Origin: Podarcis filfolensis
Taxonomy: Eukaryota
Assembly (NCBI GenBank): GCA_964270895.1
Contig: OZ185435.1
Reading direction: 5' to 3' (one strand)
Length of the DNA: 64,000 nt
A model generated the notes under the pieces. It did no database searches, was not told where the DNA came from, and was given only the letters and a program-made list of their open reading frames with translations. The translations under genes and the position numbers were made by a program. Positions 16,391-37,010 of this stretch are shown piece after piece (within the stretch, counting starts at the first letter, position 1; each line of letters begins with the position of its first letter).

Positions 16391-16456
16391 ATGAAGAAAG
16401 ATATAGATGCCTTAATAGCAGAGGAAAGGGCAGAAATCATTGCGAAGTATGAGAAG
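16391..16456 (+). CDS. USP6NL-like: TBC gene coding exon 1 ([22 protein letters not shown]); exon starts 16383
   Basis: Pyrimidine tract and AG at 16381-16382, gacATGa, donor AAG|GTAAGA. Confidence 0.9.
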
Positions 16457-34400: not shown

Positions 34401-37010
34401 AATGGTAATGGTCATTGGTCCAACACACCCATGATTTAGTATTTGCTCCGTGTGGGGAAGGGGTGGTATTTGACCTTATCTGTTGATAGTGGGACACTAC
34501 AAACCATCCACTACATCAGAATGGTGTGGTGCTGTGGTGGCATGCAATTAGGGGAGTATATATGAGTTCTCATGAAACACACTAGGAACTGTGGTTCTAG
34601 AAGAAGCCCAGGAGTTCTAAATAGAGTGCTTGGTGTCAGCAATTCCTAGCCTTTGGGGGGAAGCTCTGTCAGGTTATATGTACAGTTATGAACATGAGCA
34701 TGATCCAGCAGGGCTCTTCCTAAGGTCCATCTAATAGCCCAGTATCCAGCAGCCAACTAGCTGCCACTAGGAAGCTCTGAAGCAGAGTATGGAGGCAATG
34801 GCCCTCACCTGCAACTGAGTCTACTGATTGGATGACCCTTAGCTCTAGTATTATGAGAGGGAGAGAATTTTATCTTTCCATTTCCTCCACCTCATGCATC
34901 ATTTTATAAACCTCAATCATGTCCCTCCCTTTAGTCATATTTTTTTCCCTAAACTAAATATCTCCAGATCTCTTGAGTTGTTCCTCATGGCATTGTGTGT
35001 CTATAAGGCATTCTCACGTATGTCACTCAAAATACCTTCTCAGCCCTACTTGAGCTGTTTGCATATGTGCATGAATGTTAATGCAGGACTAAAAAAAGAA
35101 CCCCATTTAAATCAGATGAGGTGAGAGCTGCAAATATCACCATGAATTTTTTTTTGGGGGGGGAGAATATATATGAATTAGATGCACTAGACTGACGGGC
35201 TATTGTTCCTTTCCTGACCACTTATTAAATTGGGCTACAGAAAGTTTGGGTTCCTTTCAGCTGCCCTTCATTGTTGCACTTGGATTCAAAATAATAAACT
35301 AATGTGTGGCTTTTCATTACAGCAAAATCTGAAGAATTCCCCAAGAAACCTCTGGGGCTGGAGCTCTCTCTCAATCCGGTGTCAGTGAAGCCTAATGTTG
35401 CAGCTAACGGCCAGAAAAAGGCGGCCGGGGACCTCAACCATGACAAAGATGTTGTATTGCAACCTTCTCCAGATAAAAGTCCTACTTACTTGAACGAAAC
35501 AGTAGTTAATTCAAATAAGGCAATGCATGAGATAGTCTCTGTTCCACAACCCAATGGACCACCCATCCAAGCTGAACCAGCTGATGTGCACCAAAATCCA
35601 TTCCAGAATCATCATCAGCCAAGCCAAAAGTTTGAAATGGAAGAGAAACAAGTAGAAGAAAATGCCAATGAAATCCCATTGGAGGATGGTCCTATAATGC
35701 TGGATGATATTGAGGTCATTGGAGAAAGTCAGGATGTGGTGATGGTCTGTAAGGTGGCTGAATCATTGGAGAGCAGTGGTGTAGAGAGGTATAGTTTACA
35801 GGAAAATAACCCCTGTCTTTTTATAGATGATATAGACCATGCTGCTCCCCAGCGGCTTCAAGGTGAGACAGATGGATTGCCAATGGACAACTCTCTCTGG
35901 GAGGAGTCTCACTTGCAGAGCCAGACCTTAGAAGCAGACCTGTCTATCACCCCCAATAGTACAGAGACAGTATCGGAGTCAGAGATATTCTGCCAAGTGC
36001 CATTGCTTCCATCTCTTGAAGAGAAAAGAACCTCAGAGTTGGCATCATCTGTGTGCAATGATGCAGCTCTTCAAGATGGGAGCATCACCTGCTCCTCTGA
36101 GGATTTATTATCTGAAGATGTTGTGCTGCTTCCAGATCACCTGTACCAGCCTCCAAGTCCAGACTTGTCTTCTATGACAGAACATAGCCAGTCCACAACA
36201 TGTGACTTGTCAGAAAGCACAGCTGCTCCATGTCCGACCAAAGCACTTGCTGCTCTTCTTCTCCCATTTCAGGATGGACAATGGCGACCTTCTAATGCAT
36301 CTCAGTATGATAACCTGTCTGAAGGCGACAATGGAGAAGAGAAATCTCCTGTACAGGTGCCTGGTTCTAAGAAACTGGCAGTTTTAATACCACAGACTGA
36401 GCTCTGTGCTCCTGTGTTAAAGTGTACAGTGCCCAAGTCTGCATCAGTTGGGGAGCTAGAAAATCTGCAGAGGCAAAATTGGGAAACGGTAGATTTGATG
36501 CAACAGCCCAACGAATACGGCCAGCCCATTTCATTTGCGGTGCTGTATCCTCACAAGAACCACCCTGGTGGGGGCAGTGTGCCAATCTTATCTGAGCTGG
36601 ACTCCGAGATGCCGTTGCTGTCAGAAGGCTTCCAAGCCCGGCCCACTTCATCCCCGGTGCTGCAGGAGCAGCACAGCCCCTTCAGAATAGTAAAGACTAC
36701 CACCCCGCTTCACTTGGCTCATGCTACTGAGCAAGACTTCTCAAGCAAAAAGCAAGTGGCTCTGCCCTTGCCAGAAGCCAGCTGCCATGATGCAGGTGAT
36801 GCTGGGACACTTCCTCCTGTAGCTATGGAAACTCTGGGTGGGGATGCCAGGGACTGTGAGCAGAAGTCACGGAACACTTTGAGTGGTTCACCTGCCCTTC
36901 AAAGGCCAAAGCCAAAAATCCCACCCAAGGTTTTCAAAACTCATTCAGATAACAATTTCTACCCTGGCTGCCCTCCCATGGTGCAAATGTCTAAGTCAGT
37001 CACATTCTAG
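16391..37010 (+). CDS. USP6NL-like: USP6NL/RN-tre-family TBC-domain Rab GTPase-activating protein (USP6NL paralogue), 920 aa; join(16391..16456,17252..17337,18323..18362,19472..19552,22348..22455,26196..26305,27265..27313,28924..29044,30166..30260,30807..30872,31278..31377,33773..33925,35323..37010)
   Basis: 13 exons bounded by AG/GT splice in frame to 2763 nt. Translation [51 protein letters not shown]... contains the TBC Arg-finger motif IDLDVNRT (R149, 26259-26261) and Gln-finger motif YCQG (Q186, 28939-28941). Exon lengths 40/81/108/110/49/121/95/66/100/153 match the USP6NL exon series as I recall it. Orthology is unresolved. Confidence 0.93.
17252..17337 (+). CDS. USP6NL-like: TBC gene coding exon 2 ([29 protein letters not shown])
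   Basis: cttctttacag acceptor, CA|GTAAGT donor, 86 nt. Confidence 0.95.
18323..18362 (+). CDS. USP6NL-like: TBC gene coding exon 3 ([13 protein letters not shown])
   Basis: tctttcag acceptor, AAG|GTAGGA donor, 40 nt, restores frame. Confidence 0.93.
19099..19235. mobile_element. Older copy of the palindromic hAT MITE family
   Basis: ggactccagctcccatcat...gatgatgggagttgtgtcc core; degenerate TSD GAATAGCA/AAGTAGCA. Confidence 0.6.
19472..19552 (+). CDS. USP6NL-like: TBC gene coding exon 4 ([27 protein letters not shown])
   Basis: ttctgttccag acceptor, AAG|GTGTGG donor, 81 nt. Confidence 0.95.
22264..22296. repeat. (GACA)6(CA)n microsatellite upstream of the exon-5 acceptor
   Basis: Directly visible. 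Confidence 0.9.
22348..22455 (+). CDS. USP6NL-like: TBC gene coding exon 5 ([36 protein letters not shown])
   Basis: tgtgtag acceptor, GAG|GTAAGT donor, 108 nt, start of TBC domain. Confidence 0.95.
25450..25620 (-). mobile_element. Old CORE-SINE (Squam3A / MIR-like) fragment
   Basis: Reverse complement resembles 5453-5665 (tatatcccacatttcctccaaag, gcccaaaatcacccag, ttttaaccctggtc). Confidence 0.6.
26196..26305 (+). CDS. USP6NL-like: TBC gene coding exon 6 ([37 protein letters not shown]), Arg finger
   Basis: cttccttcatgcag acceptor, AA|GTGAGT donor, 110 nt. Confidence 0.96.
26925..27075 (-). mobile_element. L2-like LINE 3' fragment
   Basis: gaggaatgtttttgcctggtg...gccaggcaagcttcctttgggagagcattc resembles squamate L2 3' region. 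Confidence 0.4.
27265..27313 (+). CDS. USP6NL-like: TBC gene coding exon 7 ([16 protein letters not shown])
   Basis: Long T tract and taatag acceptor, ACG|GTAAGC donor, 49 nt. Confidence 0.95.
28924..29044 (+). CDS. USP6NL-like: TBC gene coding exon 8 ([41 protein letters not shown]), Gln finger
   Basis: atctttcag acceptor, ATG|GTAAGG donor, 121 nt. Confidence 0.96.
29132..29232 (-). mobile_element. 5'-truncated Sauria SINE (3' ~100 bp)
   Basis: Reverse complement of the tail of 136-488 (aaggtaaag...ccctgacagttaagtctagtcgcgaacgactctggggttgcggcactcatc). Confidence 0.85.
30166..30260 (+). CDS. USP6NL-like: TBC gene coding exon 9 ([32 protein letters not shown])
   Basis: tttccttccaag acceptor, ATG|GTAAAA donor, 95 nt. 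Confidence 0.95.
30293..30330. repeat. (TG)19 microsatellite 32 nt downstream of the exon-9 donor
   Basis: Directly visible. Confidence 0.95.
30807..30872 (+). CDS. USP6NL-like: TBC gene coding exon 10 ([22 protein letters not shown])
   Basis: ctctcccttag acceptor, CGG|GTATGG donor, 66 nt. Confidence 0.95.
31278..31377 (+). CDS. USP6NL-like: TBC gene coding exon 11 ([34 protein letters not shown])
   Basis: taaacag acceptor, AAA|GTAAGT donor, 100 nt. Confidence 0.95.
32861..32902. repeat. Compound (CT)n(CA)n microsatellite
   Basis: Directly visible. Confidence 0.95.
33773..33925 (+). CDS. USP6NL-like: TBC gene coding exon 12 ([50 protein letters not shown])
   Basis: gcctgccag acceptor, CGG|GTAAGC donor, 153 nt. 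Confidence 0.95.
34200..34448 (+). mobile_element. Decayed L2 LINE ORF2 apurinic-endonuclease fragment
   Basis: Translates to ...[35 protein letters not shown]...GPTH...DLVF, a degenerate form of the APE GDFN and PTH...DL motifs. Confidence 0.7.
34690..34990 (-). mobile_element. CR1 LINE 3' end fragment
   Basis: ggtccatctaatagcccagtatcc and catgcatcattttataaacctcaatcatgtccc match CR1 3' regions. Confidence 0.7.
35323..37010 (+). CDS. USP6NL-like: TBC gene last coding exon, 1688 nt ([12 protein letters not shown]...MSKSVTF*), acidic/Ser/Pro-rich probably disordered tail
   Basis: ttttcattacag acceptor in correct phase; the 568-aa ORF is by far the longest in the window; EEFPKKPLG matches the post-TBC motif of RN-tre proteins. 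Confidence 0.9.

Follow-up and report, generated by a model that had tools for sequence, protein, structure and literature searches.

Among characterised proteins, the closest to the one considered here is RN-tre (USP6NL), a GTPase-activating protein (GAP) for Rab5, Rab41 and Rab43 and a partner of Eps8. GAPs with a TBC domain speed up GTP hydrolysis by Rab proteins by supplying two catalytic residues in trans, an arginine finger (in the motif IxxDxxR) and a glutamine finger (YxQ). TBC1D3 is a much-studied "human core duplicon" family with reported links to macropinocytosis, to EGFR and insulin signalling and to the expansion of the cortex; the statement that it originated from USP6NL is reportedly due to Frittoli et al. 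in 2008. In papers up to 2026, TBC1D3 is called primate-, simian- or hominoid-specific and is said to be derived from USP6NL by segmental duplication (PMC6920530; PMC12871316; a 2024 preprint). USP6 (Tre-2), in turn, is a hominoid fusion of TBC1D3 and USP32, the N-terminus of which comes from TBC1D3 (PMC5381560). The literature has been left with a puzzle, as TBC1D3 and USP6NL are only 34% identical despite the supposedly short time of divergence (PMC12871316; PMC6920530). Here we describe a TBC gene adjoining HRAS in a stretch of 64,000 nucleotides from the lizard Podarcis filfolensis (GCA_964270895.1, contig OZ185435.1), the whole of which is referred to as the window. The label USP6NL2 is coined here for this HRAS-linked paralogue of USP6NL and its orthologues. 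With a probability of about 0.88, the locus encodes a functional TBC Rab GAP that is the sauropsid orthologue of an old, HRAS-linked sister of USP6NL in jawed vertebrates, and the TBC1D3 family descends from USP6NL2, not from USP6NL.

The gene lies on the plus strand at 16391-37010. Its model was built with tblastn and a search for GT/AG splice sites, using as query P0001, the best database match (Podarcis raffonei LOC128417083, annotated as "uncharacterized protein"). It consists of 13 coding exons, all introns are of the GT-AG type, and the 920-residue product ends in a single terminal stop. Compared with P0001, residues 1-418 are identical and six residues of the tail differ. A first-pass annotation of the window, made from the sequence alone, had delimited the gene to 16391-35345; the start was placed correctly, but the end has to be moved downstream, since the last exon spans 35323-37010. 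The same annotation described a 920-residue TBC protein with both catalytic fingers intact, and this agrees with the gene model, the motifs and the Pfam search. RabGAP-TBC (PF00566) matches residues 103-311 with an E value of 2.4e-59 (profile positions 2-216 of 216), R149 lies within IDLDVNRT (143-150) and Q186 within YCQG (184-187), and both fingers are invariant among all sampled non-mammalian orthologues. The solved structure closest to the lizard protein is that of the USP6NL TBC domain (9ltp_A, E 1.1e-166). Domain, fingers and strong conservation together indicate that the lizard protein is probably a working Rab GAP. Its N-terminal TBC domain (about residues 65-330) would bind GTP-loaded Rab and insert R149 and Q186 into the active site of the latter, and the 560-residue tail probably bears short docking motifs. 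By analogy with RN-tre, its substrates may be of the Rab5/41/43 type.

Full-length orthologues were retrieved from squamates, turtles, crocodilians and birds in a search with the last exon, and a HMMER search with residues 1-365, together with name look-ups, also gave members from ray, paddlefish, eel, coelacanth, lungfish and frogs. No second lizard copy of USP6NL2 appeared in any search. The names given to the orthologues at NCBI are inconsistent, including "USP6 N-terminal-like", "uncharacterized", "TBC1 domain family member 3L/3G/3K-like" and "ubiquitin carboxyl-terminal hydrolase 6-like". Some of these automatic names hint at a link to TBC1D3 ("TBC1 domain family member 3L-like" in birds, "USP6-like" in a lizard). 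Over the TBC region the lizard protein is 96% identical to its gecko, 93% to its bird, 86% to its marsupial and 80% to its ray counterpart, but only about 66% identical (over 365 residues) to any USP6NL, that of Podarcis included.

Outside the TBC region, the lizard tail can be aligned only to the tails of the frog, lungfish and paddlefish orthologues. Against therian or USP6NL tails no alignment was obtained beyond the short motif SNxSQYDN, so that the tails add no phylogenetic evidence. In the form R-x-SN-x-SQYDN this motif is common to USP6NL (P0403, residue 573) and non-mammalian USP6NL2 (lizard residues 680-692), and it was not found in any therian USP6NL2/TBC1D3-like protein examined. 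Motifs of the PxxDY class bind the SH3 domain of Eps8. Such a motif is present in the USP6NL tails of gorilla (PPVDY) and Podarcis (PPADY), while the protein in the lizard window contains none and is therefore predicted not to bind this domain.

The relationships were examined with an alignment of 74 TBC regions in IQ-TREE under the site-heterogeneous model LG+C20+F+G4, with posterior mean site frequencies (PMSF). The rows comprised 18 named USP6NL proteins (fishes to gorilla), 13 known and eight initially unassigned members of the second paralogue, five marsupial and 23 placental TBC1D3/TBC1D26-like proteins, hagfish and six invertebrate outgroups. True USP6NL, with that of Podarcis, forms a clade of its own (support 100/99). 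The lizard gene belongs to a USP6NL2 clade (100/100), the branching of which mirrors the species tree: ray, ray-finned fishes, coelacanth and lungfish, then frogs, sauropsids and mammals. Seven of the eight initially unassigned rows fell into this clade, and the eighth, from milkfish, fell with USP6NL. Within USP6NL2 the marsupial proteins (100/99) are sister to a single placental clade (100/100), the two being joined at 100/97. This placental clade holds mole, pig, warthog, mustelid, canid, rabbit and colugo proteins together with simian TBC1D26 and TBC1D3. A Euarchontoglires subclade (rabbit, colugo, primates) is recovered at 99/95, and the order at the base, among the mole, pig and carnivore lineages, is unresolved. 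The TBC1D3/TBC1D26 lineage is thus not confined to primates, as it has carnivore, pig, mole, rabbit and colugo members.

The first-pass annotation had suggested that TBC1D3 and TBC1D26 may descend from a second RN-tre paralogue, to be examined with a site-heterogeneous maximum-likelihood tree and an approximately unbiased (AU) test. The outcome favours that descent: the two families do not group with mammalian USP6NL, and a tree constrained to unite the placental clade with all USP6NL sequences is worse by 84.2 log-likelihood units (p-AU 1.5e-5). This constraint was taken from the first-pass annotation and the literature before any tree had been computed, and it covers every version of a derivation from USP6NL. 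When marsupials and non-primate placentals were removed, the simian sequences still fell inside USP6NL2 (Shimodaira-Hasegawa-like approximate likelihood ratio support 100), so the placement is independent of bridging taxa. Descent from the second paralogue is supported by the tree, the AU test and an indel (see below), and each of the three observations that had been named as incompatible with it was looked for and not made. What had been called a relative of the ancestor can be described more precisely: the therian lineage that yielded TBC1D3 and TBC1D26 has its sauropsid orthologue in the lizard gene.

The indel is a deletion of one codon in exon 2. It is carried (GR-EG) by all USP6NL proteins sampled from jawed vertebrates, a range that extends from milkfish and arowana to gorilla, and is absent from USP6NL2 (GRQEG), from the placental clade (for example GHRAG in TBC1D3), from hagfish and from most invertebrates (GREEG). 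Since hagfish and most invertebrates keep the residue, its loss is a derived feature of USP6NL, one that TBC1D3 lacks. The extra exon 2 codon reported in the first-pass annotation is accordingly real. Every lizard motif quoted there is present at its place, and the USP6NL and TBC1D3 strings given for comparison are those of gorilla USP6NL (P0473) and of chimpanzee and human TBC1D3 (P0451, P0460). The TBC1D26 strings given there match the macaque protein (P0202), except that macaque has HLGKE in place of HLDKE.

As a signal of kinship the shared residues hold up only in part. By outgroup comparison, the TBC1D3 clade shares with USP6NL2 the derived states E21, N122 and K125, and probably also E255 and A359, but G124, M129 and L283 are ancestral states kept by both, and S110 and A343 are uninformative. 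Overall similarity points in the same direction as the tree. The identity of chimpanzee TBC1D3G reaches 41.5% with the lizard protein and 43.1% with that of possum, against 35.3% with gorilla USP6NL, the last value reproducing the published 34%. At 56 columns diagnostic of the two paralogues it agrees with USP6NL2 at 18 and with USP6NL at four, and every member of the placental family compared is more identical to USP6NL2 than to USP6NL.

The linkage to HRAS noted in the first-pass annotation is confirmed by four minus-strand Ras coding exons that make up a complete coding sequence of 189 residues, ending in what we take to be an HRAS-type hypervariable tail. Identity to dunnart HRAS is 98% in exon 3 and 95% in exon 4. 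The TBC gene and HRAS stand tail to tail with 15.9 kb between them. In dunnart the two genes are also tail to tail, USP6NL2 ending 0.9 kb from the 3' end of HRAS, which there too has 189 residues. No HRAS was found within 10 kb of kiwi USP6NL2, and no annotated Ras gene lies within 10 kb at any placental locus examined. In archerfish (Toxotes jaculatrix), the gene downstream of USP6NL2 (32344-36089, minus strand) is not HRAS and encodes a 470-residue UEV and lactate-dehydrogenase protein. It looks like UEVLD, which we take to lie on human 11p15, the same chromosome arm as HRAS.

Downstream of three placental copies, and on the other strand, there are decayed remnants of HRAS exons. In arctic fox a relic of exon 4 is found 0.9 kb away and retains an HRAS-type hypervariable stretch, QHRVCTLSPPGEDGPG (E 5e-8 at the amino acid and 6e-14 at the nucleotide level). 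Otter has a relic of exon 3 at 1.5 kb (nucleotide E about 1e-6). In mole a relic of exon 2 lies at 2.4 kb (nucleotide E about 1e-19, 51% protein identity, one stop codon), followed about 200 bp further on by one of exon 1 (E about 1e-6); this 200-bp gap argues against a processed pseudogene. The searches were made over whole loci and gave matches solely at these downstream positions, and the order and spacing of the relics agree with those of the exons in dunnart HRAS. Intron positions, in protein coordinates, are common to the lizard, kiwi, dunnart, otter and mole genes, and the placental genes are thus descendants at the DNA level and not retrocopies.

Several points weigh against the descent of TBC1D3 from USP6NL2. 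By strict criteria, few polarised derived residues link the two (2 versus 0), and synteny, the indel and the likelihood tree therefore carry most of the case. Branches in the placental clade are long, and several of the sequences in it were predicted automatically. Among the 120 listed of 252 matches there were no monotremes, afrotherians, xenarthrans, rodents or bats. The evidence from relics covers non-primate placental loci (fox, otter, mole, pig, rabbit and colugo), and searches of the 10-kb flanks of the pig, rabbit and colugo copies gave no HRAS relic. For the lizard protein itself, GAP activity and substrate are read from motif conservation, that is, from sequence.

Three other explanations have to be considered. 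One is that the gene is merely the lizard orthologue of USP6NL (RN-tre), to which annotation pipelines gave a poor name; this would agree with the many orthologues called "USP6 N-terminal-like protein" at NCBI and with the nearest solved structure being that of USP6NL. This idea is refuted for practical purposes because both genes occur in one genus. Podarcis muralis and P. raffonei have a separate, true USP6NL (P0403 and P0400), in P. raffonei on a different contig from the P0001 gene, the longest contigs being 79 Mb for P0400 and 139 Mb for P0001. The Podarcis USP6NL falls into the USP6NL clade and, over the TBC region, shares 85.7% of its residues with gorilla USP6NL, compared with 66% for the HRAS-linked gene, which has neither the USP6NL deletion nor the PxxDY motif. 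The published view, that TBC1D3, TBC1D26 and USP6 are primate segmental duplicates of USP6NL that then diverged very fast, would make the lizard gene an unrelated paralogue and the shared residues a product of chance or ancestry. Reviews and recent preprints state this origin, citing that 13 of 14 exons are shared with USP6NL (PMC6920530; PMC12871316). Exon structure, however, cannot discriminate between the two parents, because both paralogues inherit the same intron positions. Some of the shared residues (G124, M129, L283) are indeed ancestral. Against this view stand the AU test, which rejects any tree uniting the placental clade with USP6NL, the absence from TBC1D3 of the deletion found in every jawed-vertebrate USP6NL sampled, and the closer identity to USP6NL2 of every member compared. 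The non-primate members of a clade that is sister to marsupial USP6NL2 and the HRAS relics beside three placental copies speak against it as well, and we consider it highly improbable.

It could also be argued that the fast TBC1D3 clade has been misplaced by a long-branch or compositional artefact and that its true origin is beyond recovery. From the therian node, branch lengths read from the tree add up to about 1.5 substitutions per site for human TBC1D3, compared with about 0.11 for possum (the sum from the tetrapod node to the lizard is about 0.05), and long rows were flagged in this clade. The placental clade, however, joins the short-branched USP6NL2 group and not another long branch, and it does so under a site-heterogeneous model. 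Its internal order follows mammal phylogeny, with Euarchontoglires apart from the laurasiatherian lineages, and the indel and the HRAS relics are independent of any substitution model. An artefact of this kind seems very unlikely, and descent of the TBC1D3 family from USP6NL2 is the reading adopted below.

The fate of the catalytic fingers differs among mammals. Both are kept in all sampled non-mammalian USP6NL2 proteins, in five marsupials, and in otter, stoat, foxes, raccoon dog and one rabbit gene. The glutamine finger is replaced by H in pig and warthog, and the arginine finger by L in mole and by W in one rabbit family; colugo has both changed (R to C and Q to E). In all simian TBC1D3 and TBC1D26 proteins the glutamine is R and the arginine is G, S, K, H or Y. 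The losses therefore occurred inside placentals and, as the replacing residues differ between lineages, most simply more than once.

On this descent, the lineage shortened its tail in therians. The placental genes no longer adjoin a functional HRAS, their rate of evolution is several times higher, and in a number of lineages one finger or both have been lost. Among simians the lineage gave rise to the TBC1D3 and TBC1D26 genes, and USP6 would belong to it as well if, as published, its N-terminus derives from TBC1D3. Slightly better than even, in our estimate, are the chances of a more specific scenario for the placental ancestor. The segment with USP6NL2 and HRAS would have been duplicated and then subjected to reciprocal loss, one copy keeping HRAS without the GAP gene and the other keeping the GAP gene while its HRAS decayed; this GAP gene sped up and seeded TBC1D3, TBC1D26 and USP6. 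The HRAS relics would mark the birthplace of this family, which would have begun as an active Rab GAP and lost its fingers independently at least four times. This scenario draws on the relics in three lineages and on the assumption, made from general knowledge, that fox, otter and mole keep a functional HRAS elsewhere.

Further observations were made on placental members of the lineage. Arctic and red fox have many distinct TBC1D3-like proteins on different contigs, and one red fox protein (Vulpes vulpes, P0359, 1104 residues) contains six RabGAP-TBC stretches, which suggests an independent copy-number expansion, or a tandem array, of the USP6NL2/TBC1D3 lineage in canids. Two marmoset proteins (Callithrix jacchus, P0246 and P0445, 1374 and 1002 residues) have a TBC1D26-like N-terminus followed by about 700-1000 extra residues, in which, unlike in hominoid USP6, no USP or other clear Pfam domain match was found. 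They could be long fusions or read-through predictions; the one of 1374 residues groups with TBC1D26. At a rabbit locus (Oryctolagus cuniculus; 1970-10430, minus strand, and the locus as a whole), one TBC1D3-like gene is flanked by a gene for a 227-residue homeodomain protein and is overlapped by the gene model of a 231-residue UQ_con protein.

The features of the lizard window are collected in Table 1. Coding exon 1 of HRAS lies just 260 bases from the end of the window, the promoter side being outside it, and a perfect (AC)23 microsatellite (63021-63066) is found within the first coding intron of that gene. Between the GAP gene and HRAS there is a partial tRNA-like match (51096-51152, minus strand; Rfam RF00005, 32.3 bits against a cut-off of 29 bits, model positions 8-63 of 71), which may be a fragment derived from a repeat and not a tRNA gene. 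Neither the Rfam scan nor the tandem-repeat scan of the window contributed to the case for USP6NL2. No further clear gene was found in the remainder of the window.

Table 1. Coding exons of the lizard USP6NL2 gene and position of the neighbouring HRAS gene in the 64-kb window (aa, amino acid residues).
Feature	Position	Strand	Basis
Coding exon 1, aa 1-22, ATG start	16391..16456	+	tblastn with P0001, splice search, GT donor
Coding exon 2, aa 23-50, with Q25 (codon missing from USP6NL)	17252..17337	+	AG/GT sites; indel alignment
Coding exon 3, aa 51-64	18323..18362	+	splice search
Coding exon 4, aa 65-91	19472..19552	+	splice search
Coding exon 5, aa 92-127, TBC domain begins	22348..22455	+	splice search; Pfam
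Coding exon 6, aa 128-163, arginine finger R149 in IDLDVNRT	26196..26305	+	splice search; motif
Coding exon 7, aa 164-180	27265..27313	+	splice search
Coding exon 8, aa 181-220, glutamine finger Q186 in YCQG	28924..29044	+	splice search; motif
Coding exon 9, aa 221-252	30166..30260	+	splice search
Coding exon 10, aa 253-274	30807..30872	+	splice search
Coding exon 11, aa 275-307	31278..31377	+	splice search
Coding exon 12, aa 308-358, TBC region ends	33773..33925	+	splice search
Coding exon 13, aa 359-920 and stop, long fast-evolving tail, conserved motif at aa 680	35323..37010	+	splice search; database search
HRAS, tail-to-tail neighbour	52880..63740; exon peptides about 63630-63740, 57015-57191, 54453-54614, 52880-52999	-	Ras exon peptides, HRAS-type hypervariable C-terminus

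Compared with the described systems, the lizard protein shares with USP6NL/RN-tre the TBC domain, both fingers and a long tail with SNxSQYDN. It differs in belonging to a separate clade that predates the radiation of jawed vertebrates, in one extra codon in exon 2, in its position next to HRAS and in the lack of PxxDY in the tail. The TBC1D3 family of the 17q12 core duplicon is of the same lineage by the tree, the AU test and the indel, and has E21, N122, K125, LTLRLWD and PPPAK in common with the lizard protein, to which its members are 41-47% identical. TBC1D3, however, is multi-copy, has G for the arginine finger and R for the glutamine finger (YCRD), and is 549 residues long with a short tail, whereas the lizard gene is conserved, with intact fingers and a tail of 560 residues. 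The lizard protein is an orthologue of the TBC1D3 lineage and not a TBC1D3-type protein. Also related to it are TBC1D26 and the placental genes named "USP6NL-like" or "TBC1D3D-like", which belong to the clade sister to marsupial USP6NL2 and keep both fingers in carnivores, but these evolve faster (48-65% identity to the lizard protein), encode shorter proteins and have no functional HRAS alongside. USP6 is a chimeric deubiquitinase, tied to the USP6NL2 lineage through the published TBC1D3 origin of its N-terminus, with no USP6 sequence among those compared. A literature search returned no paper describing a second paralogue or a USP6NL2 origin of TBC1D3 and no experimental study of a lizard-type USP6NL2 gene, although orthology databases may already show the relationship. 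A match in a paper on Percidae was in fact to TBC1D32. The gene itself is an annotated, if unnamed, member of a known enzyme family, the new point being the position that it gives to the TBC1D3 family.

That placing partly removes the puzzle of the 34% identity, since the split from USP6NL predates jawed vertebrates. On this evidence the ancestor of the TBC1D3 family is a conserved, HRAS-linked and probably active Rab GAP, which survives in fishes, amphibians, reptiles, birds and marsupials. USP6NL2 offers outgroups for the dating of TBC1D3 and for tests of selection on it, and carnivores and marsupials provide natural intermediates with intact fingers. Finally, it is an RN-tre paralogue whose Rab substrates could show what function TBC1D3 lost or changed.

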